A stretch of 64,000 nucleotides of DNA, taken from positions 62,001 to 126,000 of IMG/VR virus record IMGVR_UViG_3300042887_005053. One strand, given 5' to 3'. Below the pieces are notes generated by a model. That model saw only the letters and a list, made by a program, of their open reading frames with translations. It made no database searches and was not told where the DNA came from. This document shows, in pieces, positions 286 to 62,671 of the stretch (its first letter is position 1; each line of letters begins with the position of its first letter). The translations under genes were made by a program, and so were the position numbers.

Positions 286-3030
286 TTAATATTCGTTCTC
301 AAAGATAATTCTTTCACCAGTTGATTTCATCTCTGGTCCTAATTCGATTTCAACTCCGAACTTATGTGTTGAGAATACTGGTTCTTTAAGTGCCCATCCT
401 TTTAGTTTAGATTCTGGAAATATAAAATCCTTTAATTTCAAGTCTCCAAGAATTACCTGAGTCGCTATTTTAATATAAGGTATTTCATTTGCCTTCGAAA
501 TAAATGGAACTGTTCGAGAAGAACGAGGGTTCGCCTCTATTACCCATAGATTATTTTCCTTTACAACAAATTGTATATTAATAAGACCTTTAATTCCTAA
601 ACTAATACTAATCAGTTTAGACCATTCTTTAATTCTATTTAGTATTGTATTATCTAAGTTTTTGGTCGGAAGATAAGAGTATGAATCACCAGAATGAACT
701 CCTGCTCTGTCAACATGTTCCATTATTCCAATAATATGTATATCATCTCCATCACAAATTAAATCAACTTCAGCTTCGATAGCATTTTCTATAAACTGAT
801 CAATAATAATCGTATTATTAGGAAAAAATTCAATCAACTCTTCACATTGTGTGAGTAATTCTTCTTGTGTATTTATGATTTTCATTCTTTGTCCACCAAT
901 TACATAAGACGGTCTTATCAAGACCGGAAATTCAAAGTTAATATTATTGATTTCCTCAATTTTATTTATGACATGATACTTAGGATAAAGTATGTTGTGT
1001 TTATCTAATATCGAATAGAACCTATCTCTATCTTCTGCCATATCAATACCTTCAAAAGAAGTTCCAAGTATATTAACACCTAACTTATCTAATTCACCTG
1101 CTAGTTTCAGTGCAGTCTGTCCACCTAATTGAACTACAACACCGTATGGTTTTTCAAGTCTAACTATGTCTAAAACATGTTCAAGCGTAACTGGCTCAAA
1201 GTATAACTTGTCTGGTAGATTAAAGTCAGTAGATACTGTTTCTGGATTATTGTTAATCATAATTGTTTCCCAACCTGATTCTTTAGCTGAAAGAACTCCA
1301 TGTACACATGCATAATCAAATTCAATACCTTGACCAATTCTGTTTGGTCCAGATCCTAAGAATATTACTTTCTTTTTATTGTTTGTAGAGTGACTTTCAT
1401 TTTGTGAAGTTAATGAAGAAATAGGTCTCTCAAAGGTTGAATAGTAGTAAGGCGTTTGTGCTTTGAATTCAGCTGAACAAGTGTCAATACTTTTATAAAT
1501 TCTGTTGATTTTCCAACTTTGTCTCATAGAATAAATATCCACTTCTGATACACCAGTTATTTTAGAAATTTGTTCATCACTAAATCCGTTTTGTTTAGCA
1601 ACAAGTAGTGACTCTTTATTAATTTTTCTTTTTAATTCAATTTCAATTTTACAAATAAGCTCAATTTGTTCTAACAACCACATATCTATACCAGTAACCT
1701 TTTGTATTGATTCAAGTGAAATACCTTTTTCAATTGCTGATTTTACTTGATAAATTCTCTTTGGTGTTGGGTTAGATAATTCTTCTAAGTTTTTAAAGTC
1801 TATCGAAATTAGTCCACATTTTGATTCTTCAAGACCTTGGATGGCTTTTTGAAGAGCTTCGGTGAGTGATCTACCAATAGCCATTGACTCACCAACACTT
1901 CTCATTTGAAGACCTAATGTTGAATTGGATTTAGGAAATTTCTCAAAATTCCACTTTGGTACTTTTACAACTACATAGTCTAAACTTGGTTCAAACATTG
2001 CTGATTTACCAACAATTGGATTTGATATTTCATCTAAATTATAACCAATAGCTAATTTAGCAGATATTCTTGCGATTGTATAACCAGTTGCTTTTGAGGC
2101 AAGTGCTGATGATCTTGATACTCTTGGATTTACTTCAACTGCAATAATTTCTTCTGATTGAGGTTCAACTGCGAACTGAACATTACATCCACCTGCGAAT
2201 TTACCTAAATTTCTCATCATCATAATTGACATGTCTCTCATTCTTTGAAAGGTAGTATCAGAAAGAGTCATTGCCGGAGCTATTGTAATTGAGTCACCAG
2301 TGTGAACACCCATTGGATCAAAGTTCTCAATAGTGCAGACAATAGTAACATTATCATTATTATCTTTAAGTAGTTCAAGTTCATATTCTTTCCAACCAAG
2401 AACTGCTTTTTCTACTAATACCTGAGATGTTGGAGAAGCGTCTAATCCTTTTGTAACAACTGATTCAAATTCTGATTCAGTTTTAGCAAAACCACCACCA
2501 AATCCACCCAAGGTGAAACTTGGTCTAACTACAAGTGGAAATCCTAATTTCTTAGAAGCTATAGTGGCCTCTTCTAATGTGTTTACCGCAATCGATTCTG
2601 AGATTCCGATATTTAATCTTTTCATAAACTTTCTGAATTCATCTCTGTTCTCAGTGAGTTCAATTGTATTAAGATCAACTCCGATTATTTTACAATCGTA
2701 TTTCTCCCAGATTCCGAGTTCGTCACAATCTTTACATAGATTAAGTGCTGTTTGACCACCCATAGTTGGTAGAACAGAATCTATGTTATGTGTTTCTAGT
2801 ATTTTGATTATACTATCAGGAGTTAGAGGCCACATATAAACTTTATCAGCAGTTTGTGGATCTGTCATAATAGTTGCGGGATTGTCATTAATAAGAATGA
2901 CTTCGATGCCCTCTTCTTTAAGAGATTTTGAAGCTTGAGTTCCTGAGTAATCAAATTCACAAGCTTGGCCGATTACGATAGGTCCGGATCCGATAATTAA
3001 TACTGAGCTGATAGAGTTGTTTCTTGGCAT
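286..3030 (-). CDS. carB: Carbamoyl-phosphate synthase large subunit (lacks C-terminal MGS/allosteric domain)
   Basis: IGSGPIVIGQACEFDYSG, GVHTGDS, EVNPRVSRSSALASKATG, GSGPNRIGQGIEFDY; ends shortly after LGPEMKSTGE. Confidence 0.97.
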   Translation of the reverse strand: MPRNNSISSVLIIGSGPIVIGQACEFDYSGTQASKSLKEEGIEVILINDNPATIMTDPQTADKVYMWPLTPDSIIKILETHNIDSVLPTMGGQTALNLCKDCDELGIWEKYDCKIIGVDLNTIELTENRDEFRKFMKRLNIGISESIAVNTLEEATIASKKLGFPLVVRPSFTLGGFGGGFAKTESEFESVVTKGLDASPTSQVLVEKAVLGWKEYELELLKDNNDNVTIVCTIENFDPMGVHTGDSITIAPAMTLSDTTFQRMRDMSIMMMRNLGKFAGGCNVQFAVEPQSEEIIAVEVNPRVSRSSALASKATGYTIARISAKLAIGYNLDEISNPIVGKSAMFEPSLDYVVVKVPKWNFEKFPKSNSTLGLQMRSVGESMAIGRSLTEALQKAIQGLEESKCGLISIDFKNLEELSNPTPKRIYQVKSAIEKGISLESIQKVTGIDMWLLEQIELICKIEIELKRKINKESLLVAKQNGFSDEQISKITGVSEVDIYSMRQSWKINRIYKSIDTCSAEFKAQTPYYYSTFERPISSLTSQNESHSTNNKKKVIFLGSGPNRIGQGIEFDYACVHGVLSAKESGWETIMINNNPETVSTDFNLPDKLYFEPVTLEHVLDIVRLEKPYGVVVQLGGQTALKLAGELDKLGVNILGTSFEGIDMAEDRDRFYSILDKHNILYPKYHVINKIEEINNINFEFPVLIRPSYVIGGQRMKIINTQEELLTQCEELIEFFPNNTIIIDQFIENAIEAEVDLICDGDDIHIIGIMEHVDRAGVHSGDSYSYLPTKNLDNTILNRIKEWSKLISISLGIKGLINIQFVVKENNLWVIEANPRSSRTVPFISKANEIPYIKIATQVILGDLKLKDFIFPESKLKGWALKEPVFSTHKFGVEIELGPEMKSTGERIIFENEY

Positions 3031-4097
3031 AATTTAATTTCTTTAATAAATTTTTCAAATAGATATTTTGAATCGTTTGGACCTGGTCCTGCTTCTGGAT
3101 GATATTGAACTGAAAATACTGGTAGGTTTTTCATTTTAATACCCATAACAGTTTGATCATTTAAGTGTTCGTGTGTTATTTCTAAATTTGGATTATTTAG
3201 TATCTGTTCTCTAACGAGACAGAATCCATGATTTTGTGAGGTTATTTCACACTTACCGGTTTCTAAGTTCTTAACTGGATGATTACAACCACGATGTCCA
3301 TAGAACATCTTATAAGTATCTATGTTGTTGACTATACCAATTAATTGATGACCCATACAGATTCCGAAAACTGGCTTTTTAAGATTAATTATCTTTTTAA
3401 TAAGCTGAACCATCTCAGGCATTGCTTGTGGATCACCTGGACCATTAGATATAAAAAAACCATCAACTTTATAAGATTTGATGGTTTCGAAATCCGTTGT
3501 TGACGGAAAAATAACTAAGTTGGTATCGAACTGAAGTAAATTCTTTATAATAGATGATTTGATACCTAAATCAATAATACCAATTTTATTCTTACCAGTT
3601 CCAATTTCTTGTATTTTACTACTTGTTACTTTACTGTGAAGATTTTGACCAGTCATTTTAGGATGTTCAGATAATCTTTTTTTCAATTCAGATAATTCTA
3701 ATATCTCAGATGAAATAATACAGTTTTGAGCACCAAACTCTCTAACATGATTTACAAGTGCTCTAGTATCTATATCACTTATACCAACCGTATCTTCTAA
3801 ATATTTTTGTAGAGATGTCGCGTTGTTTCTAGAATAGTTTTGTGAGAAGTTTCGACAGATTACACCAGAAACTTGAACTTTGTCAGACTCAATATCATCT
3901 GAATTTGATCCATAATTCCCAAGATGTGAATTAGTGAGAATTACGATTTGGCCAAAATAAGATGGATCTGAAAAAATTTCTTGATAACCGGTCATTCCGG
4001 TATTGAAACAAATTTCACCAAGTGTGGTGCCGATTTTCCCGAAAGACTTTCCTTCAAAAACACTTCCGTCTTCAAGAAGTAGTATGCATTTAGGCAT
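2997..4097 (-). CDS. carA: Carbamoyl-phosphate synthase small subunit
   Basis: FNTGMTGYQE, SNGPGDP, FGICMGHQ (catalytic Cys), SVQYHPE. Confidence 0.97.
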   Translation of the reverse strand: MPKCILLLEDGSVFEGKSFGKIGTTLGEICFNTGMTGYQEIFSDPSYFGQIVILTNSHLGNYGSNSDDIESDKVQVSGVICRNFSQNYSRNNATSLQKYLEDTVGISDIDTRALVNHVREFGAQNCIISSEILELSELKKRLSEHPKMTGQNLHSKVTSSKIQEIGTGKNKIGIIDLGIKSSIIKNLLQFDTNLVIFPSTTDFETIKSYKVDGFFISNGPGDPQAMPEMVQLIKKIINLKKPVFGICMGHQLIGIVNNIDTYKMFYGHRGCNHPVKNLETGKCEITSQNHGFCLVREQILNNPNLEITHEHLNDQTVMGIKMKNLPVFSVQYHPEAGPGPNDSKYLFEKFIKEIKLCQETTLSAQY

Positions 4098-6619: not shown

Positions 6620-8035
6620 ATGAAGTTAGTTAAATCATATAACTTATTCTTAGAAGCTCAAAGTCAAGTACAAGCTCAAAACGATTTAGAAAGACCAAAA
6701 ACTATTTATAACCCTTCTAATTTAGTTTCTGAAATTTGTGTTAGTATGGTATTGCTTAATAATGAATTTCTTGATAATATCTTAGATAGAGGTATGAAGG
6801 CAAGATATTCGGAAAACTCTCAAGTATTTTTAACTGATTTGAAAAACTTATTAATATCTAAAAACCGTTTACACTTGGGTAAATTTGAAAATGGTAGATG
6901 TGTAAGTGATGAAGAGTATTCAAAAATAAATGGATTCTTTGGAGAAGTTGACTTTTCGATTGAAAAAGACTGGAATAAACTTAACGATTCTAGAATTACA
7001 GCAAGAAATATAATTGATAAGCTATTAGTTGATTCTAAATTAGAAGAAGATATGATTTCTAAGATCTATTGGATTGGTCCTAATAAGACTAAGGAAAATA
7101 GTGAAGATATTGTAATAGAAACTACCGACGGTAAACAATACAGTTTTTATTTGAACAAAAATTTGAGTATGACTAAATCATCATCATTCAACACTTTTGC
7201 TGATGATATTATAGGTCAAGATATAGAACAGTTATATAGTGAAGAATACATTTCTAAATGGGATAAGTTAATTCAAAACTGGGTTAGAGTAATTTATGAA
7301 AATGCTAAAAAAGGTATTCAAATTCACATTGAAAAATTTATTGATCCAAGTCGAATCAATACTATAGGATGGTTTGAGTTTTTTGATATCAAACACAGAG
7401 ATCCAAGATTCAAGCATTTAGGAGAATTTATTCCTGAACTAAATAAAAATATTTTAGAGTTTTCTGATTTATTGAATGAAATTTGGAAAAATAGTGAGAG
7501 TTGTTTCATGGATTTTGATAGAGTATACAAAGATTGGATGGAAAAGAAAATTTATATTCTTAATTCTAGAATATTGGAACATATTATAACAGACTCACTT
7601 ACTGTTAATAATATTGACGAAATAAAGAAATTAGAAGATGGATTTAAGTCAGCTGATGGTACTCTTAAAATGAAAATAATCAAAAATATAGTTGAAAAAT
7701 TAGGATGCACTGAGAAGTCAGTCTATTATTTAGGAAATAAAGGAAACTCATTTCATCAAGTACCGTCTCGTCAATTTTTTAGAGAGTTTTATGATGACTT
7801 AAAAGTTAAATTTGATTATCATGTTAAATTAATAGTTGAAAAAGAAGAGGAAAGTAATGACTTCAATTTCAAGCTTATTTTAGAACTAGATAATCAACCA
7901 CTAATAAATTGTAATATTCAAGTTAAGTTTTCTGGTGGTGAAGTATCTAACAAATTGTCAGCTAAATTTAAATTCGAGCCTGTTGATAATTTTAATGTAT
8001 TGATCTCAAATAAAATAAGTGGTGTAGATTCATAA
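6620..8035 (+). CDS. Hypothetical protein, probably virion-associated
   Basis: 471-aa ORF; leader MKLVKSYNLFLEA; TAATATATA at 6588. Confidence 0.6.
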   Translation: MKLVKSYNLFLEAQSQVQAQNDLERPKTIYNPSNLVSEICVSMVLLNNEFLDNILDRGMKARYSENSQVFLTDLKNLLISKNRLHLGKFENGRCVSDEEYSKINGFFGEVDFSIEKDWNKLNDSRITARNIIDKLLVDSKLEEDMISKIYWIGPNKTKENSEDIVIETTDGKQYSFYLNKNLSMTKSSSFNTFADDIIGQDIEQLYSEEYISKWDKLIQNWVRVIYENAKKGIQIHIEKFIDPSRINTIGWFEFFDIKHRDPRFKHLGEFIPELNKNILEFSDLLNEIWKNSESCFMDFDRVYKDWMEKKIYILNSRILEHIITDSLTVNNIDEIKKLEDGFKSADGTLKMKIIKNIVEKLGCTEKSVYYLGNKGNSFHQVPSRQFFREFYDDLKVKFDYHVKLIVEKEEESNDFNFKLILELDNQPLINCNIQVKFSGGEVSNKLSAKFKFEPVDNFNVLISNKISGVDS

Positions 8036-18456: not shown

Positions 18457-20382
18457 TTATTTTTTTATTATTTTACAAGTTTGTGATTGTGAATTAGCTT
18501 TCATATTTGCAAAGTACAAACCACTTGAAAAATTCGATATATTATCTTGATAGATATATTTACCAGCTGGCATATCCTGATTTATAATCATCTGATTAGT
18601 GACACCGTTCGGATCTGAAATATAAATCAAGACCGCTCCTGCATTTTTTACTTCAAACTCCAATGTTATCTCTCCAGTTGTTGGATTTGGATAAACTTGA
18701 AAAACTTGATCGTTCTGACCAGCAACTTTAGTGACAACCACAACACCATTTGAAGGGTTAATATTTAAATCTTTTGAAAATTCATTTCCTGAGAACTTTC
18801 TTGTTGTAAATAATGGTGAAAAATCCCAGTCACTTTGAGGTTGTTTAGCTAAAAATCTTAGTGTAAAGATTTGATCATCATTATTAACTAAATACTCTAG
18901 TTCAGCTGTTGGGTCATATCCACCCCATTCAATAGTATTATCTCTAGTATTTAAGAATGTCAACCACATCATAGTTTTCTCAGAATTCAAAATATCTTTG
19001 AACTCAAGAATTTCAGGATTATACATTACAGCAAGTTGTAAAGAAGATACTTGTTCACCATTAGTTAAAACTTTAACTGGTACTTCAACTAAGTTTCCTT
19101 CACTAACAGTGAGACTCGGCATATTTATTTCTATATCAGATGTTGGAAAATCGTACTGAACTCTTAAATCAATAACATTCTCTGTTGCTGATGGATATTC
19201 TGGGTGGTTTACTTCAACATTTATTGGTGTCAAACGAGCCATGTGGAAACCAGTACCATTTGCATCACCAGGAACTAAAACATAAAATTGAACTGAACTT
19301 GGTTGACCAGGTAAAATATTATACACAAAGTTTGTAACACCTGATATAGAAGATGTATAGTTATTTGTTGGATTTGTAGTAATAGTATTAAACTCTGTTT
19401 GTGTAAAAAACTTTATATCAGATGTAGAGTTAGGCCAAGTTGTAAATCTACCAGCAATTCTACCAAATACGCCATAAGCATCACTAATGGTTACATTGTT
19501 ACTTGAGTTCACATCAGCACTGTAAAAATCAAATCCAGATGGATTAGATGTGCCTAAAACCCATTGATTGATCAACTCAGCATCTGCAGTTGAAATTACA
19601 TTACCAACATTCATAGTGTCTCCTTGAACTGAAATCCTTACATCAAAGAATGTGGTATCGATTGATTCATTAAAAGAAAAATAACCATCTACATTTGTAG
19701 TGTATGTATCATGTATAGACCAAACGCTACCTGTTTTTGGTTTCTTTTCTAAAGCAACAGATAAATTCTTAGCACCAGATCCAGTAACATTTGTGAATGT
19801 GCCTGAAAAATTCAAAGTGTGTAAAAGAAAGTTACCACCATAATTATGTAAACTAAGAGGTAGATCGAAACCTGGTTGAGTCGCAACATAACTTGTGTAG
19901 TTATTAGTTGGTATTAAAGTCGTCCAACTAAGATTGTTTATACTTGTTATATTTGTAAATATAGAACTCTCAACATGCTCAAAGGTCAATTGGAATGTTT
20001 CTCCATTTGATAAACTAAAAGTGCTACTATTACCGGTATAAACTAAAGTAATTGTTATATAACCTTGAGCATTGTTGTCTACATATTGTAAATAAAGATT
20101 CGATGAAGACCCAACTAAATTTACACTACAAGATGTAAAAGCTGTGTTATCATAGAACACTCTAAACTGAGTACCTGTTGTTAAAGTAGTTGTAGTATTT
20201 TGTAGGGTTATCAAAGCAACTGTTTGGCCTTGATTAGTAGTACCAACTGTATAGTTAGTATCGATAATAGCCCAAATGCCATTACTTGGCGCAGGTGGTC
20301 CACTTTGTGAGTAAAGTGAAACTGGTAATGTAGACAACAATGTCAAGATTACCACCGAAAGGACGGATTTCAGTAGTTTCAT
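18457..20382 (-). CDS. Cohesin/dockerin-like protein with T9SS C-terminal sorting domain
   Basis: Signal peptide; two cohesin-like domains (QFRVFYDNT; VEVPVKV..SLQLAVMYNPEILEF); DVNSSNNVTISD; C-terminal VYPNP...GLYF...KIIKK. Confidence 0.8.
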   Translation of the reverse strand: MKLLKSVLSVVILTLLSTLPVSLYSQSGPPAPSNGIWAIIDTNYTVGTTNQGQTVALITLQNTTTTLTTGTQFRVFYDNTAFTSCSVNLVGSSSNLYLQYVDNNAQGYITITLVYTGNSSTFSLSNGETFQLTFEHVESSIFTNITSINNLSWTTLIPTNNYTSYVATQPGFDLPLSLHNYGGNFLLHTLNFSGTFTNVTGSGAKNLSVALEKKPKTGSVWSIHDTYTTNVDGYFSFNESIDTTFFDVRISVQGDTMNVGNVISTADAELINQWVLGTSNPSGFDFYSADVNSSNNVTISDAYGVFGRIAGRFTTWPNSTSDIKFFTQTEFNTITTNPTNNYTSSISGVTNFVYNILPGQPSSVQFYVLVPGDANGTGFHMARLTPINVEVNHPEYPSATENVIDLRVQYDFPTSDIEINMPSLTVSEGNLVEVPVKVLTNGEQVSSLQLAVMYNPEILEFKDILNSEKTMMWLTFLNTRDNTIEWGGYDPTAELEYLVNNDDQIFTLRFLAKQPQSDWDFSPLFTTRKFSGNEFSKDLNINPSNGVVVVTKVAGQNDQVFQVYPNPTTGEITLEFEVKNAGAVLIYISDPNGVTNQMIINQDMPAGKYIYQDNISNFSSGLYFANMKANSQSQTCKIIKK

Positions 20383-40933: not shown

Positions 40934-41596
40934 TTATTTCTTTTTGATAATCTCATCGATTATTCCATATTTAAGAGCATCTTCCGCAGTCATCCAATAA
41001 TCTCTATCTGCGTCTTTTTCAATTTTTGAATAAACTTGTCCAGTTCTTTCTGCTAATATCTCGTAAAGTTCTCTTTTCAAAGAGTTTACTTCACGAGCAT
41101 CGATTTCTACATCTGAAGCTTGAGAGTAACCATAGCTACCCGATAAAGGCTGATGAATCATTGTTCTAGCTCTTTTAAGAGACTTTCTTTTACCTTTTGT
41201 GCCACAAGCAAGTAAGATAGATCCCATTGAAGCTGCTAGACCAGTATTAACTGTTACAATATCTGGTCCGATATAATCCATAGTATCTAATAGACCAAGT
41301 CCACTATAAATATCCCCACCAGGTGAATCAATATAAATTTTGATATCTTTCTTTGGATCTAATTGTTCTAAGTATAATAATTGAGCTTTGATAATGTTAC
41401 AACTATCTGTATTGATGTCGGTGCATAGGAATATAATTCTACTCTCTATTAGTTTAGAGAAAATATCTACCATGATACCTTCTGTTGCGTCATCTAAAAC
41501 ATGTTGAGTATATCCTACTTTAGCATAAGAGTCATAGTAGTTACTGTTTATGTTGAGGTGCTTTGTAGCAAAATTTCTAAAATCTCTATTTGACAT
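40934..41596 (-). CDS. clpP: ATP-dependent Clp protease proteolytic subunit
   Basis: YIDSPGG, GLAASMGS (Ser), MIHQP (His), DRDYWM (Asp). Confidence 0.95.
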   Translation of the reverse strand: MSNRDFRNFATKHLNINSNYYDSYAKVGYTQHVLDDATEGIMVDIFSKLIESRIIFLCTDINTDSCNIIKAQLLYLEQLDPKKDIKIYIDSPGGDIYSGLGLLDTMDYIGPDIVTVNTGLAASMGSILLACGTKGKRKSLKRARTMIHQPLSGSYGYSQASDVEIDAREVNSLKRELYEILAERTGQVYSKIEKDADRDYWMTAEDALKYGIIDEIIKKK

Positions 41597-50735: not shown

Positions 50736-51973
50736 TTAAAACCCACCACTAAAAATGTCCATTATAACAGTAAGCCTTTTAGATATTTCCGGCAGTCCAA
50801 GAGGCGCAATAATCGAATTAATTGGACTCAATATACACTTTTCAAATTGAGTATCTAAGTCAATCTCAGGTGCCATCTCAATAGGATATGATCCTCTAAT
50901 GTAAGCAAAAGTATCATTCATTGATTTATCTTTGACATAGTAATACTTGATCTTAGTTCCAGATTTGATAAACTCATACTTAGATTGTAAAGATTTATTT
51001 CTATGTAGTAAGAAGTTATAATAAGCAGAAGCTTTAACAGCAAAGTGAGCTCCACTAACAAACTCTAATTTGTCCTTATCATTCAAACACTTATCATCAT
51101 AATTTGAACAAGAAGATTGCATACAGATCTCATCTATTCGATCTGGTACACACAAGTCAAACTCTTTTCTTAAATTCTTTACTAACTTTAGTAACTCCTT
51201 AATGTTAAATGTATCTGGGTGTTCAAACAAATATTTAACAATACCAACAATCTTATCTCTTGCAAAAAGAGGAGTAGATGATCTCACAAGTTCAACTCCC
51301 TTAGGATACATATAAGTCAATCTATCATAAGGAATTCCATCTTCATAAACAATATGTTGAATATACTTCTTTTTAGCAATGTTTATAATTGATTCAGAAA
51401 TACGCTCTAACTCAAAATCTTGTTTGTTTTCAACACCATACTCAGCAGCATGTTCATCTAAACATTTTTTGAAATATCCAGCATATCTATTCTTATCTAA
51501 TGCATGAATAAACTCTAATTCTGTTTTGTATGCATGTTTCCATTCACAATGATCCATCGCTGGCTTAAATGATACAAAAAGTGAATCAGTATCAGCATAT
51601 ATAGAAACTTGCTCATCTCTTTCAATTGGAGTAACATTTTTGAGATTCATTTTTTCATGCAACTCAGTATCTAAATGCCATTGATTATACCAATAGTCTT
51701 CATTTACTTTATGCATTGTTTGCGTCAGGTTTCTACCTTCAGCTGTTATGGTTCCAGCAACATGGTTATTAAATAAAATAAAATAGGGTGTTGCGAATGC
51801 ACCGTAACTACCATTTAACACTAACTTCAAAGCTTTTTTTCACCCCCTCTGAAAATAATCAGAGGGGGTTATCTAGCGAGCTGAAGAGCGTTGAAATAAT
51901 CAACTTCCTTCTTCAGCTCGTTTGCTTGTTTTTTTAGTGACTCGATCTTTTCTAATCTTTCTTCTCTAGTCAT
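50736..51973 (-). CDS. Family-B DNA polymerase C-terminal subunit (gp43B-like), in two segments: 51973-51875 and 51830-50736
   Basis: Joined product reads ...YFNALQLA|LKLVLNGSYG (motif B), then IT.EGR, YADTDS, KKKY, KGVE; no exonuclease domain or motif A. Confidence 0.85.
51831..51877 (-). other. Candidate programmed translational bypass element (44-nt gap)
   Basis: GCT(51877-75) AGA TAA, 11-bp perfect stem (51869-59/51852-42), G-A7, GCT(51833-31). Confidence 0.7.
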
Positions 51974-52041
51974 TAATTTTTATTTTTTGTAAATTTGTTC
52001 TAAACAGAACTAATGGTATTTAATATATTAACTTAAATAAC

Positions 52042-53061
52042 ATGACTTATATGTTTAAAGAAGAAGAAGTTTTAGTTAAGATCAATGCTCGTAATGTCAA
52101 TTACTATAAAGAAAAAGGATATGATGTATCTATATCTGGGTTCACTGACTCAAAAGATTTTTTAGTAAAAACATTGGATATACCCAAAGGTTCACATTTG
52201 AAAATAATCGCAATCTGTGAATTGTGTCAGTGTGAAAAAAATATATCGATTGAGAAATATTATACAAATAAAGAAAGAAATAATAAAGGATATTATTCAT
52301 GTTTTAGTTGTAAGACAGTAGAAAAAGAAAAAACTTGCTTGAATAAGTATGGTGTAAAATCATACTCACAAACAAGTGAGTTCAAAGAGTCTGAAAGTAA
52401 AAAGTGGAAAGGAATACAGAAAGGTTCAGAAAAAGGTAAAAAAACTAATTTAGAAAGATATGGATTTGAATCTTTTTTTCAAACAGAAAAGATGAGAGAA
52501 ATGAATAGAAGTTGGATGTCATCTGATGAGTTTAGATCAAAATCAAAACAAACAATATTAGAAAAATATGGAGTTGATAGTTTTTCAAAAACATCCAATT
52601 TTAGAAACATAATTAATGAAAACAAAGAACAGATAGTAGAAAAAATAAAACAAGTTTTTTTGGACAAGTATGGTGTTAATTGGCCATCTAAAGTAAAAGA
52701 TATTGTCGATAAGTCCTTAAAAACTAGAGAGGAAAATGGTGATATCATACCACCTGAAAATTTAAGTGATTTTCAAAAATACCGAAAATTAGTTAGGAAA
52801 ATTACCAATAGAAATAAGAAAAAACTTTTTGAGGACTGGCTTGGATTTGACTATTATGATAACGAGTTTATTAAAGGTAATTTTTCACTATCATCATCAC
52901 ACAGACTATATCCAACAATTGATCATAAAATATCGATACATTACGGATTTACAAATAAAATATCAGCCTCTGAGATAGGCCATTTAGACAATTTATGTAT
53001 AACAAAAAGAAGAATTAACTCAACGAAGAGACAGTTAATAGAAGAAGTATTTAACTCATAG
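52042..53061 (+). CDS. Putative free-standing homing endonuclease (Zn-ribbon, KYGV repeats, C-terminal HNH-like domain)
   Basis: CELC..CFSC; four (K/R)YG(V/F) repeats; PTIDHKISI...NLCIT...N.TK. Confidence 0.75.
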   Translation: MTYMFKEEEVLVKINARNVNYYKEKGYDVSISGFTDSKDFLVKTLDIPKGSHLKIIAICELCQCEKNISIEKYYTNKERNNKGYYSCFSCKTVEKEKTCLNKYGVKSYSQTSEFKESESKKWKGIQKGSEKGKKTNLERYGFESFFQTEKMREMNRSWMSSDEFRSKSKQTILEKYGVDSFSKTSNFRNIINENKEQIVEKIKQVFLDKYGVNWPSKVKDIVDKSLKTREENGDIIPPENLSDFQKYRKLVRKITNRNKKKLFEDWLGFDYYDNEFIKGNFSLSSSHRLYPTIDHKISIHYGFTNKISASEIGHLDNLCITKRRINSTKRQLIEEVFNS

Positions 53062-53078: not shown

Positions 53079-54401
53079 TTAAATACCAGTATAATTAGTT
53101 GGACTCATACTTTTTAATTCTTTTTTTATGAGTTCTGGTATTTCTAATTGGTCGATAAATTGGTTGATTACTTCTTGGTCTATTTCTTTTCCTCTAGCAA
53201 GTTCTTTAAGTTTTTCGTAGGGTTCTTGTACTTTTTCTCTTCTTAAAACAGTTTGGATTCCTTCGGTTACAACAGACCAATTATTTTCTAAATCTTCTGT
53301 TATTACTTCTTCATTTAATACAAGTTTATCTATTCCTTTTTTAATTGAGTCTATACTTATTGTAATGTGCGCAATTGGAACCCCGATATTTCTGAGTACA
53401 GTTGAATCTGTTAAATCTCTTTGTAGTCTTGAGATTGGTAGTTTTTCTGATAGATGAGTTAGTATAGCATTTGCCATTCCTAAATTTCCTTCTGCATTTT
53501 CGAAGTCGATTGGATTTACTTTGTGTGGCATTGCTGAAGAACCGGTTTCATTTGGATTCGTTTTTTGATTGAAATAGTTCATAGAAATGTATTGCCAAAT
53601 ATCTCTACAAAAATCAATTAGAATTACATTGATTCTTCTTAGGTTGTCGAACAAAACAGCAAGTGAATCATAATGATCAATTTGAGTAGTATATTGAGAC
53701 CTTTTTAATCCCATTTTTTGAGTGAAAATATTTGCAAATTCTTTCCAATCGATTTGTGGATAAGCTACATGATGGGCATTAAAGTTACCTGTTGCTCCGC
53801 CAAATTTACAAGAAAGTTCTATTTTATGTAAACTAAGAATTTGATTATCTAATCTTTCAACAAATACCATTAATTCTTTGTCCATTTTGGTTGGAGAAGC
53901 AGGTTGACCGTGTGTATGAGCAAGCATTGGTGTGTCTTTACAATTATCTGACAAAGACTTAATCTTATTATTTAGTTCGGTTATATCTTTGATATAAGTA
54001 TTTAGCCAATTAAGAAGTTGTAAAGGAATTGCTGTGTTATTAATATCTTGTGATGTTAGACCAAAATGAACAAACTCTTTGAATTCAGATAGGTTAAGTT
54101 TTTCTAATTTTGTTTTGATAAAATACTCGACTGCTTTTACATCGTGATTGGTCTTTTTTTCGATTTCTTTTATCTCATTAGCATCGGCTTCACTAAAGTC
54201 ATAGTAAATACTCATAAGATCATTAGCATTAGGTATGTTAAGATTTATGGCATTATTTAGTTCAATTAAATATTTGACTTCAACATATACTCTATATTTA
54301 ATAAGAGCGAATTCCGAAAAGAATTCTGATAGTTTTTGAGTTTTGTTGTGATATCTACCATCAATTGGACTTACTGAGGTTAAGGGTGTTAATTTATTCA
54401 T
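53079..54401 (-). CDS. purB: Adenylosuccinate lyase
   Basis: SPIDGRY, TNHDVKAVEY, HFGLTSQD, GSSAMPHKVNPIDFEN; start probably the ATG at 54401. Confidence 0.95.
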   Translation of the reverse strand: MNKLTPLTSVSPIDGRYHNKTQKLSEFFSEFALIKYRVYVEVKYLIELNNAINLNIPNANDLMSIYYDFSEADANEIKEIEKKTNHDVKAVEYFIKTKLEKLNLSEFKEFVHFGLTSQDINNTAIPLQLLNWLNTYIKDITELNNKIKSLSDNCKDTPMLAHTHGQPASPTKMDKELMVFVERLDNQILSLHKIELSCKFGGATGNFNAHHVAYPQIDWKEFANIFTQKMGLKRSQYTTQIDHYDSLAVLFDNLRRINVILIDFCRDIWQYISMNYFNQKTNPNETGSSAMPHKVNPIDFENAEGNLGMANAILTHLSEKLPISRLQRDLTDSTVLRNIGVPIAHITISIDSIKKGIDKLVLNEEVITEDLENNWSVVTEGIQTVLRREKVQEPYEKLKELARGKEIDQEVINQFIDQLEIPELIKKELKSMSPTNYTGI

Positions 54402-55179
54402 CGTCTGCGGTAAAGTCTTGTTCAAAGCTGAGCATCAAATTTGAGTTTTCGTCTTTGACTAAAATAAAGGTTTCGAAAATACTGAAATAAATGTTGTCAT
54501 TTTGATCATTAATATTTGATAAATATTTTTTACCAAAAATTAATTGTGTGTTTTTAGCATCAACTTCATCAACTATAAGTTCCCATTTTGATAGTTCATT
54601 CATAGTTACTTTATTATCAGTTACATTAATATTAACAATTCTTTCTTCGTTGTTAATACCACAAAGTTTCTTAACATCTGCGAAATCTTCTTTAGAAATT
54701 TTGAATGACCACTTTGATAATTTTGGATTTAGTCTTGTTTCTAAAAATTGTGGATTTAGATCACGGATTTTGTGTTGTTCTCCACCAACAATAGTGATTT
54801 TCAGTTTGTTATTTGTAAACTGTGCTGCTCTAACATGCATAGTATCTTCTGAGTCTGGACTTGGTTTGAATACTAAATCTAGTTTAATAGTCGAGTTAGT
54901 GTTAAATAAAGCTAAGTTCTTAGCAAATTTTGTAGCAGAAGTGATGATTAAATCGAAAGTAGTATCTTGTTTGAAACCTTCAATATAGTCATCTGTCTTC
55001 AAGAGATAAGTTTTAAGTGCTAAAACACTAACATCGTTAGATATCATTGAATAGAGTAGAATATTAGAACTTGTGATTTTAATTTTAACACAGTCTTCAA
55101 TATTAGTGAGGTCTTTGAATTTTTGTAGAAAGTCACTAAAGTTATTTTGATTAAATTTTAATGCTAATTTATTTGCCAT
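54394..55179 (-). CDS. Putative DNA sliding clamp (gp45/PCNA-like)
   Basis: About 260 aa with twofold repeated alpha/beta pattern; close to the polymerase gene; no diagnostic motif. Confidence 0.45.
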   Translation of the reverse strand: MANKLALKFNQNNFSDFLQKFKDLTNIEDCVKIKITSSNILLYSMISNDVSVLALKTYLLKTDDYIEGFKQDTTFDLIITSATKFAKNLALFNTNSTIKLDLVFKPSPDSEDTMHVRAAQFTNNKLKITIVGGEQHKIRDLNPQFLETRLNPKLSKWSFKISKEDFADVKKLCGINNEERIVNINVTDNKVTMNELSKWELIVDEVDAKNTQLIFGKKYLSNINDQNDNIYFSIFETFILVKDENSNLMLSFEQDFTADDE

Positions 55180-55224: not shown

Positions 55225-55665
55225 TTAGTCAAACCACTTATTGAGTATTTGATTTATTTTCTTGTCTCTCGATATTAATTCTGAATTATTCTCAAATCTA
55301 TCTAAATATTCTAGCGTTTTAATTTGTCTATAGAGTGAAGAAAAGAAACAAAATCCTAATATAGAAGTTAGTCCAGCTAATGATTTTGAATTCATACTTA
55401 GACTAATAATACTTCCGGAAATTTCAATTAAAAATATTTTCAAATCAAATAGACTAACAAATAGTCCTGATATAAAACCAGATAAATAAATAGGCCAGTT
55501 TTTATTTTCGTTTGATTTGAAGTTAATAAGAAATAAAAGTAAAGTAACTAAAAATAGAGATAAAAAAATATTAGTCAAGTTTTGAATATTACCAAACAAA
55601 AGTGGAGGCAAAATCAAAAAAACAAGACTAAATATTAGATATTCTTTTTTTGTAGAACTACTCAT
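55225..55665 (-). CDS. Multi-TM membrane protein
   Basis: About four hydrophobic helices; C-terminal RDKKINQIL. Confidence 0.6.
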   Translation of the reverse strand: MSSSTKKEYLIFSLVFLILPPLLFGNIQNLTNIFLSLFLVTLLLFLINFKSNENKNWPIYLSGFISGLFVSLFDLKIFLIEISGSIISLSMNSKSLAGLTSILGFCFFSSLYRQIKTLEYLDRFENNSELISRDKKINQILNKWFD

Positions 55666-56756
55666 ATCTTTATTTTATCAAAATAGTCTTTGAATGTTTC
55701 GTGAGGTACTGCTACAGATATTCTTGAGTATTGTGAATTTACAGTTCTATTAAGTGAAAATTTGTTTAAAGGAACTGAAGATATTTTATTGAATAAGAGT
55801 ATATCGAAATTAATATTCACGATTGCAAAGGGACCTGTTGGTAGTGTTGGATATTCATCAAAAAGAAATCCTCTATCTTTTAGATATTGAATATTCTTTT
55901 TAATACTCATTTGTGTTTGTAATTTGTAATTATCTAATGATAATTTTCCATTGTCTGTTGTGAGTAATCGAGTTATTATTTGTTGTGGTATGGTTGAAAT
56001 AGAGTTATACTTATATAAAGATCTAATCTTCATTGAGTTATATAATTCTTGATTTTTTGTTGCTATGTAGCCGATTCTTAATCCAGATAATCCCATAGAT
56101 TTAGAAAAAGAAGATAATACGATTACATTATCATAAAATAATTCGTGGATAGGATTAGTCAAATCGTTGAAAAGATAGTAATATGGTAGATCTAAAATAA
56201 CTGTAATATTATTTTCCTTTGTGTGATCTAAGAATTTTTTTAGTTCTTCGAAGTCTGGTGCCCATCCTGTTGGATTAGAAGGATAACACAACATTACAAC
56301 CCCTGAGAAGCCATTTATTGGATCAAAGGCTTTAAAATTTGATATGTTGAAGTCATCGAATTCTTGCGTGTTTTTACCATGAATTTTAAGAATTTTGTTC
56401 CAAGATCCCCAGTGGTATTTTGGTATCCAGAAGTTTTCTTCAGATAACGAATTAATTACTAAGTCGAGTGTTGCCATACCACCTGGTACAGTCATCACAT
56501 AGTGGTCTTTTAACTGAAATTTATCTTTAATAACTTCTACTAATTTAGTATCTCCATCATTCCCACCGTATTGTTGAACTGTTTTTTGATTGTAGTCAAA
56601 GTCACTCATAAAAGAATTTAAGTCGATCATATCGACATCCATAACACCACGATGAAGTTTCAAATAAGTCTCTCCTGTTGTTTTTTCGAGGTAAGAAGTT
56701 CTTTCTCCTATTTCGACGATTGATGAATAGGTAACTGGTGAATGGTTTACTTTCAT
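55662..56756 (-). CDS. PLP-dependent aminotransferase class I/II
   Basis: YPSNPTG, ILDLPY, SSFSKSMGLSGLRIGY. Confidence 0.85.
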   Translation of the reverse strand: MKVNHSPVTYSSIVEIGERTSYLEKTTGETYLKLHRGVMDVDMIDLNSFMSDFDYNQKTVQQYGGNDGDTKLVEVIKDKFQLKDHYVMTVPGGMATLDLVINSLSEENFWIPKYHWGSWNKILKIHGKNTQEFDDFNISNFKAFDPINGFSGVVMLCYPSNPTGWAPDFEELKKFLDHTKENNITVILDLPYYYLFNDLTNPIHELFYDNVIVLSSFSKSMGLSGLRIGYIATKNQELYNSMKIRSLYKYNSISTIPQQIITRLLTTDNGKLSLDNYKLQTQMSIKKNIQYLKDRGFLFDEYPTLPTGPFAIVNINFDILLFNKISSVPLNKFSLNRTVNSQYSRISVAVPHETFKDYFDKIKI

Positions 56757-57586: not shown

Positions 57587-57847
57587 TTGTATTTATATAT
57601 ACCAGAAATAATCTTGTTTAAGAGAATGGATATTAAATTTGAAATCGAAAAGGCTCAAAAAATTGAAATTCTCAATGATAATGATTTACAAAGTGTAAAA
57701 GAATTATACTTTTCTAAGGATGGTATTTTACCAAAAATTTATAATTTTGCTACTACGAAAAAAGGAGAAGAGTCTTCACTTATTTTATCGGATTTAAATA
57801 AAATCAGAAGTATAATTACCAAAAAAATAAGTGATTATACTAGCTAA
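57587..57847 (+). CDS. Hypothetical protein
   Basis: ORF track; true start may be the internal MDIKFE. Confidence 0.4.
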   Translation: MYLYIPEIILFKRMDIKFEIEKAQKIEILNDNDLQSVKELYFSKDGILPKIYNFATTKKGEESSLILSDLNKIRSIITKKISDYTS

Positions 57848-59000
57848 TAACACTAACTACTTCAGGATAATACTCACAAGCTTCTGGATTTTTGCCTTCA
57901 TAGTTAATAACTGATAATGCATATCTCATGGCATTTAATCTACCAATTCTTTTATCGTTTGAATTGATTATTGTCCAAGGAGCTTTTTTAGTTGATGTTT
58001 TTTCAAACATCTGATTTTTGTACATTGTAATAATATTCCACTTTCCGATTACTTTTTCATCGTTTGGTGAAAACTTCCAGAATTTAATAGGTGATGTTTT
58101 TCTTAATTCAAATCTTTGAATTTGTTTTTCTTGTGTTATAGAAAACCAAAACTTAATTAAAGTAATTCCTTGATTAACTAATCCAGCTTCCCACTTATTA
58201 ACATTTTCCATGAAATCTCTATACTGTTCTTCAGTACAATATCCCATAGCTGGTTCAACTACAGCTCTGTTATACCAAGAACGATCAAAGAAAACAATTT
58301 CACCAGGTTTAGGTAATTCTTTTTCGTATCTCGCAAACCAATTATTCTTTTCTTCTTCAGTTGGCATTCCAAGAGCAACAATTCTGAATATTCTTGGATT
58401 CAAAACTTCTGTGAATCTTTTTATAGTAGAACCTTTACCAGCTGAATCTCTACCTTCAAAAACTATTGCAATTCTTTGATTTGTATTTTTAACCCATTCT
58501 TGTAGTTTAACTAGTTCAATTTGAATTTGGTATTTTTCATCTTCGTATTGTCTTCTTGTTAGAATAGATTTTTCACCTTCCATTCTGTCAATGTGTTCTT
58601 CTTCTGGTGATAAACCTTCAGCTTTTTCAATGTATTCATCAACTCTATCGATTAATGACTCATAGTAGATTTCGAATTCTGCTGAAATCATTTTTTTGGT
58701 CCTTTTTCCTTTTAAATCGAGTAGTTGGTGTATTTTTCTTAAAAAAGTTTCTGTATTAAAAAAAGTAACTATTTCTTTAGTGAATTCTTTTTCTAGTTCA
58801 CTTAAAATCATTTCAATATCGATATTGTCAAAATCTTTATAGATTACTTCGCCTTTTTCTGTAGAAATATTTTCTAATATAAAATCACGATAAGTGTTCA
58901 ATCTCATCACAAATTGATTTTCGATATCTTGAAGTTCTTCTACTGGTAGTTCGAATTCTAATTCTTCGTTTAGAAATGTATTAAATGGTTTGAGTTTCAT
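57840..59000 (-). CDS. ppk2: Polyphosphate kinase 2 with N-terminal extension
   Basis: FEGRDSAGKGSTIKR, FDRSWYNRA, IKFWFSI, WKFSP.D, APW...S.DK. Confidence 0.93.
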   Translation of the reverse strand: MKLKPFNTFLNEELEFELPVEELQDIENQFVMRLNTYRDFILENISTEKGEVIYKDFDNIDIEMILSELEKEFTKEIVTFFNTETFLRKIHQLLDLKGKRTKKMISAEFEIYYESLIDRVDEYIEKAEGLSPEEEHIDRMEGEKSILTRRQYEDEKYQIQIELVKLQEWVKNTNQRIAIVFEGRDSAGKGSTIKRFTEVLNPRIFRIVALGMPTEEEKNNWFARYEKELPKPGEIVFFDRSWYNRAVVEPAMGYCTEEQYRDFMENVNKWEAGLVNQGITLIKFWFSITQEKQIQRFELRKTSPIKFWKFSPNDEKVIGKWNIITMYKNQMFEKTSTKKAPWTIINSNDKRIGRLNAMRYALSVINYEGKNPEACEYYPEVVSVIS

Positions 59001-59011
59001 ATAATTATATA

Positions 59012-59914
59012 TTAAATTTTTGAGTCAAATATATAAACATCAAAAGTAGTATTACCTTTGACTTTTTTAATCTTTTTAAGTACATCGCCTGATATTGAAT
59101 CCAAAACTTTAAATACTCCAATATTCGTTCCTTTTTCATCTAATATCTTAACTGTATTTCCTGGTTGACCGAGTGCACCAAGCATTGCTACATATTTGTT
59201 TCCATAAATACTTTTTAAGAAAGAAACTCTAATATTTGCAACATCCTTAATATTATTTACATAAGGATTGTCTAATGGATTATTTAAATCTAAGATTGTA
59301 TCAGTTGCTTTAGCTTTAACTGTGACGAATTTTCTGGTTTCTTCTCCTAAGGTTATATCTTCTTTATTTTGAATTTCTTGTGATTTAATTAAAGCTTGTT
59401 GATTTTTTCTTATTTCGTTAAAATCAGCTCTTGCTAAAATTCCACCTCTCATTCCTTTGTCATTCATATTATATCCTGATGGTGGAAGTCTATAGAAAGA
59501 ACCTGTAAATGTAACTGATAAAAGTCTATCGAATCTAAATAGCCTCCAAATTTTATTAATATGTCTATTTCCTGATACAGACCATCCATTTAAGTGGTAT
59601 CCTCTTATTAAAAATTTCCCTTTAGATGATTTACCGATAACCATTGGATAAATCACTCTTTCTGATCCCATAAATCTTTTATCTTTTTCCCCTTTATAAT
59701 TGATAAGAAAAACCATTCCATATTTAATAGCCTTCATAATGAGTTCTTGTGTGGGTTTTAGTGGCTCATTAACTGGTATATCCGCTATATTTTTAATATT
59801 TTTTAATTGAAATCTAGGAACATAGGAATTATCCTCTTTTAGGTTATAATTCTCTTTAATTACAAACTCAATTGGCTTGGTGTTAAAATAATTTTTTACT
59901 TGACTTATGTTCAT
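59012..59914 (-). CDS. WYL-domain-like protein
   Basis: INY...ERVIYP...LIRGY...WRLFRFDRL. Confidence 0.6.
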   Translation of the reverse strand: MNISQVKNYFNTKPIEFVIKENYNLKEDNSYVPRFQLKNIKNIADIPVNEPLKPTQELIMKAIKYGMVFLINYKGEKDKRFMGSERVIYPMVIGKSSKGKFLIRGYHLNGWSVSGNRHINKIWRLFRFDRLLSVTFTGSFYRLPPSGYNMNDKGMRGGILARADFNEIRKNQQALIKSQEIQNKEDITLGEETRKFVTVKAKATDTILDLNNPLDNPYVNNIKDVANIRVSFLKSIYGNKYVAMLGALGQPGNTVKILDEKGTNIGVFKVLDSISGDVLKKIKKVKGNTTFDVYIFDSKI

Positions 59915-60842
59915 TATATTTAAATATCTTTTTAGATTTTATAAGTGAAAGTAAATTATTGATTTTCACATTTTTATTATCATGTATTACGTGAAGAATA
60001 TTTTTATATATTTTGTTATCTTTTTCACTTTTTATTTCTTTATCCATTAGTATCAAATATTGTCCAAAATTATTTTCAATTTTTGATTGAAAATAATCAA
60101 TTTTTGGATGAGATTTATATCTCCATAGATATCCTGCAGTTTGAAACCTTTCTCCCATACAAACTTGATTTATTTTAGATAGACTAATTTTATTATACAT
60201 TGATGCTTCTGTTAAGGATTTATATTCTGTTTGATTATTTAAATAATCAATTCTTGTAACAGGATACTGTTTTTTGTTTCTTATTCTTTCTTCAAATTTA
60301 TCTTCTTTATATAAAAATATAAATTTATTTTTCCATATTTTTATATCACCATTGCATATTTGACTAATAGTCTGTGGATGAGTATTATTCATCTCACCAG
60401 CCTCCTTTACTGATTTGTATTCTTCTATAAAATTACCATCTATATCATATTTAACCACTGGTCTATTTAACTTTTCTATGTAATCATTTTTGTGTTTATA
60501 TCCAATAAAAGTTTCACCACCCTTGGTATAATTTGTTAAAGGACCTGTTTTATCCACAATTCTACCTATTTCTCTTATTAGTTTTATTTCTATTTCTATA
60601 GCCTCTTCATTTGTGAGGTTATTTTGGATTTTTCTTATAATTGGTTCTATTCCTGCCTTTTGTATTTTTAATATCTTATTATTCTTTAGTGGATTCCATT
60701 CTTTAATTTTAAGATGTCTGAGATATCTTGATTTTTTGCCTTTACCAATATAAAATGGTTCATATTCTAATTTGTATCCATCATAGTTATATTGTCCTGG
60801 TTTTCTTGGATCCATATAGACATAGATATAATATTCATTCAT
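59883..60842 (-). CDS. GIY-YIG homing endonuclease with NUMOD1 repeats
   Basis: YYIYVY.DP...FYIGKG..R..H, E..LI...G...LTN; two YKS..EA...I.Q.C.G modules. Confidence 0.8.
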   Translation of the reverse strand: MNEYYIYVYMDPRKPGQYNYDGYKLEYEPFYIGKGKKSRYLRHLKIKEWNPLKNNKILKIQKAGIEPIIRKIQNNLTNEEAIEIEIKLIREIGRIVDKTGPLTNYTKGGETFIGYKHKNDYIEKLNRPVVKYDIDGNFIEEYKSVKEAGEMNNTHPQTISQICNGDIKIWKNKFIFLYKEDKFEERIRNKKQYPVTRIDYLNNQTEYKSLTEASMYNKISLSKINQVCMGERFQTAGYLWRYKSHPKIDYFQSKIENNFGQYLILMDKEIKSEKDNKIYKNILHVIHDNKNVKINNLLSLIKSKKIFKYNEHKSSKKLF

Positions 60843-61996: not shown

Positions 61997-62671
61997 ATGA
62001 GGAAAATTACAAATAGAGAAGAAGCTAATCAATACTACAAGCAAATAAATGAAGTAATTGATGAGTATATCAAGGATTGGAAGATTAGACCTACTGAAGT
62101 ATATCACTATTTCAAAAGAAATATGAATAGTTTTTTAGAAGAGATAGGGTTATCTGACGTGATTGGTATACATAAAGTAGTTGAAGATGTTTTAACTCAT
62201 AAGAGAAACATAGAATTAGATGCCGTTTTGACCTTTGAGAGTTTCAATTCATTGGATAAATTAGAATACGAGAAGGTTTTAGGTGACTTTTTTCAAGTAG
62301 GTTTAGGACATATAGACATAGTTGATTCTAATAATAATATTTTTAGGGTGAAAGACTTTGGTGAAAGTAAATTTGTTGCTTGTTATAGTAAATCAGACAT
62401 TTTAGACATTACCGAAGAAGTTGTTAATGAACTGATGGAGATTGCAGTTTCAAGAATGGTTTCTATTCCCACAGAAGAAATGTCGGTCAAATTCTTTATT
62501 GAAGACATAGTAGATAAGGATAAACTCCGAAATAAATTGATGAGTGAAGTTAAAACTGATATATTCAAACTTCTTGAGTACAGAATAAAGAAAAATGAGT
62601 CTATTCCTTTAAGTTCGAAGATTATTAAAAGAGAGGATTTAGGCAATTATCTCGTATTCTACTTCTGTTAG
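61997..62671 (+). CDS. Hypothetical protein
   Basis: 224-aa ORF; TAATATATA at 61983. Confidence 0.55.
   Translation: MRKITNREEANQYYKQINEVIDEYIKDWKIRPTEVYHYFKRNMNSFLEEIGLSDVIGIHKVVEDVLTHKRNIELDAVLTFESFNSLDKLEYEKVLGDFFQVGLGHIDIVDSNNNIFRVKDFGESKFVACYSKSDILDITEEVVNELMEIAVSRMVSIPTEEMSVKFFIEDIVDKDKLRNKLMSEVKTDIFKLLEYRIKKNESIPLSSKIIKREDLGNYLVFYFC

Follow-up and report, generated by a model that had tools for sequence, protein, structure and literature searches.

A 44-nt GC-rich hairpin insert interrupts motif B, the most conserved motif, of a phage family B DNA polymerase gene, and comparative evidence indicates that it is most likely a programmed translational bypass element over which ribosomes hop, one member of a previously undescribed family. 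The insert lies on the minus strand of the window (the whole 64-kb stretch of DNA analyzed here, positions 62,001 to 126,000 of IMG/VR record IMGVR_UViG_3300042887_005053). An initial annotation had proposed such a hop from the sequence of the window, and every feature it described was confirmed. An ORF starts at ATG 51973 and reads 33 codons (MTREE...NALQLA; 51973-51875) to a GCT take-off codon (Ala33, 51877-51875), which is followed by AGA and the stop codon TAA (51871-51869; together 51874-51869). The last A of the stop is the first paired base of a hairpin (51869-51842) with a perfect 11-bp stem (51869-51859 pairs with 51852-51842), a C5/G5 clamp at its base and a 6-nt loop. An 8-nt spacer of G+A7 (51841-51834) then leads to a second GCT, the landing codon (51833-51831), and decoding would resume at TTG (Leu) in a segment that reads LKLVLNGSYG and stays open for 364 codons to the stop (51830-50736). 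The landing frame is closed by a TGA three codons upstream. The coding gap (51874-51831) is 44 nt and shifts the frame by 2, and 33 + 364 aa gives a polypeptide of 397 aa.

To determine the identity of the interrupted gene, we performed profile searches, in which the long ORF matched Pfam DNA_pol_B (9.4e-14) and a PHROG annotated as DNA polymerase, identifying it as the C-terminal part of a family B DNA polymerase from motif B onward. Two huge uncultured phages (LR745206 and LR756502) encode an uninterrupted 474-aa ortholog that starts with the same 33-aa N-terminus and reads ...EVDYYNA[LM]QLALKLVLNGSYG... across the junction, and a DNA alignment with these two orthologs showed a clean 44-nt insertion in the window, with GCT at 51877-51875 as the last collinear codon. 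Thus, the polymerase is already split into separate N- and C-terminal genes in this clade, and the C-terminal gene (polB-C) of the window carries an extra block inside motif B. The N-terminal (exonuclease) half was not found among the 36 window ORFs scanned with Pfam and must lie outside the window.

We next tested if the hairpin could be an artefact or a conventional regulatory element. It is the only GC-rich stem of 8 bp or more in the window, which is 29.8% GC, no other copy of the exact stem was found there, and the region folds at -37.2 kcal/mol (z = -6.4 against shuffles). An outer helix pairing the two flanks in this fold was not conserved in relatives. An independent assembly (JACCDO010645858.1) carries the identical element next to a 95.6%-identical neighboring gene, and related elements occur in dozens of samples, making an assembly artefact very unlikely. 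Although a strong GC-rich hairpin in an AT-rich genome might suggest a transcription terminator or attenuator, this is likewise very unlikely: the hairpin lies inside a conserved codon string, is followed by an A-run on the coding strand and by TTATCT on the other, with no T-run on either strand, and a terminator scan found nothing. A scan against Rfam gave only sub-threshold noise, and a scan of the window for a tRNA that might serve the hop found none.

To determine if the insert is unique to the window, we scanned IMG/VR and JGI metagenomes, which returned 118 related loci, of which 98 could be classified. Of these, 44 are uninterrupted and 54 carry a 36-48 nt insert within the ten codons A-L-K-L-V-L-N-G-S-Y of motif B. 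The inserts comprise 39 distinct variants in five classes, named by the last collinear codon: Ala (5 variants, including the window; GCT>GCT or GCT>GCA in four and GCT>TCT in one), Leu (16 variants; CTT or CTC>CTA), Val (3 variants; GTT>GTA or GTT), Ser (1 variant; TCT>TCA) and Tyr (14 variants; TAY>TAA, AAC, GAY, AAA or AGC). One gene, at locus L091, carries both a Leu-type and a Tyr-type insert nine codons apart and would need two hops. The variants share one architecture, consisting of the take-off codon, 5-6 nt that usually hold a stop (the second codon after take-off in 27 of 38 variants, the first in 6, and late or absent in 5), a 9-12 bp stem with a C4-6/G4-6 clamp at its base, a short loop (a tetraloop in 25 of 38, mostly GAAA, GTAA or TTCG), an A-rich spacer of mostly 4-8 nt (11 nt in one variant), and the landing codon. 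Gaps occur in all three phases and use all three stop codons, which excludes frameshifting, readthrough or codon reassignment as a common explanation. Neither do the inserts fit a self-splicing intron or intein, as they are only 36-48 nt long, occur in all phases and, apart from the five variants with a late or absent stop, contain early stops.

We then analyzed whether the hairpin is maintained as a structure. The inner stem has 24 different sequences that are fully complementary in cis but only 51% complementary in trans, and RNAalifold found compensatory changes in 6 of 9 pairs. On a MAFFT alignment, 90.2% of cells pair compared to 72.4% in shuffles (0 of 500 shuffles as high), there are 82 doubly changed cells compared to 23.9, and the covariation score is 0.473, compared to 0.149 in shuffles and 0.04-0.12 for slid registers. 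Furthermore, the last base of the stop codon covaries with the base after the G-run (TAA with ...GGGGGT, TAG with ...GGGGGC). A covariance model found the hairpin as its only hit in the window and, in 300 kb of related loci, only the motif-B copies. The hairpin is thus selected as a structure.

The gene is intact on both sides of the gap. Every carrier keeps a complete downstream ORF, and the 33-aa upstream ORF has the same pattern of synonymous and non-synonymous differences among carriers as among non-carriers (ratios 0.90 and 0.93). This argues against the interrupted gene being a decaying pseudogene whose function is supplied by another polymerase, as does the finding that the 39 variants show no other lesion and that only one polB-C locus per contig was returned; although the rest of the 204-kb contig could not be inspected for a second polB, we consider this reading very unlikely. 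Separate production of a 34-aa peptide and a 364-aa protein that assemble non-covalently is also unlikely. In its favor, the resume codon of the window is TTG, a possible start preceded by an A-rich stretch, the polymerase is already split in this clade, and split phage enzymes that still assemble are known. However, the first codon after the gap is CTA or CTT (Leu) in most variants, or GGA (Gly) at the Tyr site, none of which is a start codon, there is no consistent in-frame start nearby, and the landing frame is often closed by a stop immediately upstream. Moreover, depending on the variant, the break falls before, inside or after KxxxNGSYG, L091 would need a free 9-residue middle piece, and the matched codons would be unexplained.

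To test if take-off and landing codons are matched, we used 3-mers from the A-rich spacers as the null. In the Ala, Leu, Val and Ser classes, the first two bases of the landing codon matched the take-off codon in 4/5, 15/15, 3/3 and 1/1 variants, respectively, against null probabilities of 0.02 or less, with CTT>CTA in 14 of 15 variants of the Leu class. The commonest pattern is take-off NNU and landing NNA in four-codon boxes, which, we infer, would suit a single U34 tRNA that pairs weakly at take-off and fully at landing. At the Tyr site the landing codon is only near-cognate and varies freely, but 12 of 14 variants match two of three bases (null 0.235, P = 1.6e-6). These P values treat related variants as independent and so overstate the significance. 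Alternative take-off points at the Tyr site (the codon just before the stop, with landing on the downstream GCA or TTC codon, and a +1-frame AAC/AGC repeat) delete or replace the invariant Gly of motif B or fit only some variants, and were rejected.

Codon matching also bears on the one rival that the sequence data leave seriously open, namely that the insert is cut out of the mRNA by a hairpin-measuring endonuclease and rejoined by an RNA ligase, so that the ribosome reads a continuous message. This would be protein-catalysed splicing of protein-coding messages in a phage-bacterium system, serving the spread of homing endonuclease cassettes. The distances from the hairpin to both junctions are fairly constant, such that an enzyme could measure them, and the Tyr-site variants lack a synonymous landing codon. 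However, excision would require neither matched codons, which are found in four site classes in polB and in three terminase cases (see below), nor a conserved in-frame stop right after the junction. Furthermore, the hairpin has no bulge-helix-bulge shape, no Rfam family matches, and no such mRNA splicing system appears to be known in bacteria or phages. We therefore regard excision as possible but unlikely.

We next analyzed the distribution and genomic surroundings of the inserts. On a tree of 86 polB-C proteins the insert states are patchily distributed and need 28 changes, with at least 17 gains or losses of an insert. In the window, polB-C is separated by a 68-bp A/T-rich divergent intergenic region without an SD-like motif (51974-52041) from a divergently transcribed, homing-endonuclease-like gene of 339 aa on the plus strand (52042-53061). 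A homolog of this gene lies immediately upstream of polB-C in 22 of 35 carriers, compared to 2 of 25 non-carriers, both of those partial or distant (Fisher p = 1.5e-5), and a full-length copy is found in 17 of 35 carriers and 0 of 25 non-carriers. The ORF matches PHROG families 12131 and 3339, annotated as homing endonuclease, and has CxxC...CxxC, DUF7487 repeats and an invariant C-terminal D-H...N...N block. However, Pfam gave only DUF7487, and a PDB sequence search, a profile search, and a Foldseek search with an AlphaFold2 model (pLDDT 81, pTM 0.35) gave no significant match, so that its nuclease fold and activity are unconfirmed. A long subfamily (339-378 aa) accompanies the Ala, Leu and Val sites and a short subfamily (about 275 aa) accompanies the Ser and Tyr sites, with one exception, the imperfect Ala variant at locus L106. 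A homolog with 97% coverage in the 735-kb phage LR756501 is not next to a polymerase gene.

Homology between close relatives that differ in insert state breaks sharply at the insert. Two loci, L018 and L019, encode identical proteins from the conserved GAF tripeptide just after motif B to the end, yet carry different insert classes, and their DNA is 92% identical from 4 nt before GAF onward and unalignable upstream. In other pairs, the 100-nt first exon is 73-75% identical while the flanks are 84-89% identical. This is the pattern expected if the endonuclease gene, the first exon and the insert move together by homing. The insert is most likely the immunity half of a mobile cassette, although this role is inferred: it would disrupt the target of the endonuclease-like protein in the highly conserved motif-B DNA, as reported for the 50-nt gene 60 insert and MobA in T4, where the insert protects the carrier and is found in every phage with the endonuclease and in several that have lost it (Manning and Atkins, bioRxiv 10.1101/2022.08.31.505936; Atkins et al., NAR 2016, PMC5009743).

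To test the generality of the element, we performed two narrow pattern scans of IMG/VR for a stop and C5 followed by G5 and an A-rich stretch. These recovered the polB elements and, in addition, the same module inside the Walker A motif of terminase large-subunit genes in unrelated AT-rich phages. Three loci (L137, L126 and L139) read ...YGGGAGG with take-off GGT, spacer TGT, stop TAA, an 11-bp stem with a tetraloop, and landing GGA followed by GKS. A fourth (L175) has take-off GCT and landing GCA two or three codons earlier in the same motif, and a fifth (L211) reads GGTSAG with take-off GGG and landing GGA followed by KT. Pfam confirmed terminase domains downstream, and no endonuclease homolog was adjacent. 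These cases replicate the matched-codon rule in a second gene.

Together, these data are best explained by programmed bypass, the only reading that explains all the comparative data, although without RNA or protein evidence the mechanism is inferred. In this model, a ribosome that starts at ATG 51973 reads to GCU, where the very stable clamped hairpin, sitting inside or at the mouth of the mRNA channel, blocks decoding and translocation; peptidyl-tRNA(Ala) unpairs, the ribosome slides over the hairpin and the A-rich spacer without decoding, the tRNA re-pairs with the second GCU, and decoding resumes at UUG to restore motif B. With the take-off codon in the P site, the base of the stem is 8-9 nt downstream of its first nucleotide, inside the 11-nt downstream footprint of the ribosome, and one codon earlier the stem sits at the 11-12 nt position where stem-loops have been shown to block A-site tRNA binding and translocation. 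The codon after take-off, AGA, is the commonest Arg codon here and so is not a hungry codon; we infer that the G/C clamp creates the pause and that the UAA would be a fail-safe releasing ribosomes that did not hop, although why the A site is not simply decoded is unexplained. Two elements of the initial annotation require correction. The charged N-terminal peptide, cited there as a defining bypass feature, is equally present in uninterrupted orthologs and so is not evidence of a bypass-specific nascent-peptide signal, and the SD-like role assigned to the G-run is doubtful, because only 2 of 50 window genes have an SD-like core upstream. The latter, together with a protein with a type IX secretion sorting domain, hints at a Bacteroidota host, a phylum in which SD-independent initiation is probably usual.

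The T4 gene 60 bypass likewise has a stop at or near the start of the gap, a stable, often tetraloop-capped stem-loop, a G-rich stretch 5' of the landing site, and a hop 33-46 codons into the downstream half of a split essential replication gene; in both cases the insert is present whenever the adjacent endonuclease is intact and in some genomes that have lost it, with a patchy distribution that looks recent. In contrast to gene 60, the inserts described here lie in polymerase motif B and terminase Walker A rather than topoisomerase, the hairpin starts 5-6 nt after the take-off codon instead of containing it, the stop is usually the second codon rather than the first, the gap is 36-48 nt, there are five take-off positions and one double insert, and the endonuclease-like gene is divergently oriented and of a DUF7487 family with no shown relation to MobA. 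No bypass-specific N-terminal extension is seen. The bypass elements (byps) of Magnusiomyces capitatus mitochondria (PMC5009743) are also short, mobile blocks in coding sequences of an AT-rich genome that are tolerated by translational bypass, and some rely on two-out-of-three pairing like the Tyr-site variants. However, they occur at 81 sites in 12 genes of one genome and depend on an unused A-site codon and relaxed mitochondrial decoding, whereas here there is one site per genome (two in one relative), in bacterial-type translation, with a highly ordered hairpin and an endonuclease partner. The candidate bypass in the terminase gene of Streptomyces phage Hau3 (PMC10732093) also involves short non-coding blocks that are absent from orthologs, but these are 10 nt long, begin with the rare UUA codon, are thought to be regulatory, and have no C5/G5 hairpin and no adjacent endonuclease. 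Finally, split inteins with a free-standing endonuclease gene (Dassa et al., PMC2677866), one of which is present at motif C in the same polB-C gene of relatives, similarly let an endonuclease-linked insertion sit in a conserved catalytic motif without destroying the protein, but by protein splicing of an in-frame intein rather than by skipping of a 40-nt untranslated block.

Efficient long-range translational bypass has rested for decades on one natural bacterial example, T4 gene 60 and its homologs, all in topoisomerase genes, and the 2022 survey still called that cassette unique; our literature searches found no report of bypass elements in a polymerase gene or in huge or jumbo phages. The apparently independent family described here amounts to a ready-made mutational series for asking what a ribosome needs in order to take off, slide and land, including a natural double-hop gene and cases with only two-of-three re-pairing, in phages whose genes mostly lack Shine-Dalgarno sequences. 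In practice, gene callers will mis-annotate these polymerases and terminases as truncated or broken. Moreover, the family suggests that pairing a homing endonuclease with a hop-over immunity insert is a general strategy for invading the most conserved motifs of essential phage genes.

The same hairpin module, comprising a take-off codon, a spacer codon, a stop, a C5 stem G5, an A-rich spacer and a synonymous landing codon, interrupted the Walker A motif of terminase large-subunit genes in unrelated AT-rich phages, at the loci L137:4807-6170 (also L126 and L139), L175 (minus strand, near 7707) and L211:5207-6485. The take-off/landing pairs at these sites were GGT>GGA, GCT>GCA and GGG>GGA, and no endonuclease homolog was adjacent. 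Furthermore, at the related polymerase locus L091 (1396-1503), one polB-C gene carried two hairpin inserts, a Leu-type and a Tyr-type, only nine codons apart, so that two successive hops would be needed. In the predicted fold of the window's own element (window:51810-51900, minus strand), the sequences flanking the gap paired with each other, the take-off GCU with AGC next to the landing site, which would bring the two sites together. However, the flanking sequences differed in relatives, and this pairing therefore looks window-specific.

In the related locus L009 (1124-4254), the only one of these loci that we inspected, the same polB-C gene was further broken at motif C: YADTDS was followed by a Cys-led N-intein half and a stop, then by a free-standing 369-aa endonuclease-like ORF, and then by a C-intein half ending in HN followed by SLFVSF. 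This is a 'fractured gene' with a split intein, and the same interruption pattern was present in L010, L039 and many metagenome loci. In addition, most relatives had an extra segment of about 75-80 aa in the middle of polB-C, as seen when L001:5905-7329 and L002:5878-7302 were compared with window:50736-51830 (474 aa against 397 aa once the window's two pieces are added), whereas the window and its closest relatives lacked it. In loci without the endonuclease gene, the gene just upstream of polB-C matched a PHROG annotated as translation initiation factor (L019:2272-2790 and L025:2317-2850; also L027 and L095). In the window itself, a second, unrelated homing-endonuclease-like gene with GIY-YIG plus NUMOD1 domains (59883-60842, minus strand) lay 8 kb from the polymerase gene.

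The window also carried an unusual set of metabolic genes for a phage, encoding carbamoyl-phosphate synthase large and small subunits, adenylosuccinate lyase, a class I/II aminotransferase, polyphosphate kinase 2 and a ClpP protease (286-4097, 53079-54425, 55662-56756, 57840-59000 and 40934-41596, all on the minus strand). Upstream of many genes in the window, for example just above 50724, 55179, 59000 and 60842 and just below 52042 and 61997, a recurring TTAATATATA-like motif was located about 8-12 nt upstream of start codons. The upstream regions were 85% A+T and only 2 of 50 genes had an SD-like core, which suggests a phage promoter or leader motif and SD-independent initiation. Finally, a 641-aa protein encoded at 18457-20382 (minus strand) had a cohesin-like domain and a type IX secretion C-terminal sorting domain (Por_Secre_tail), which hints at a Bacteroidota host.
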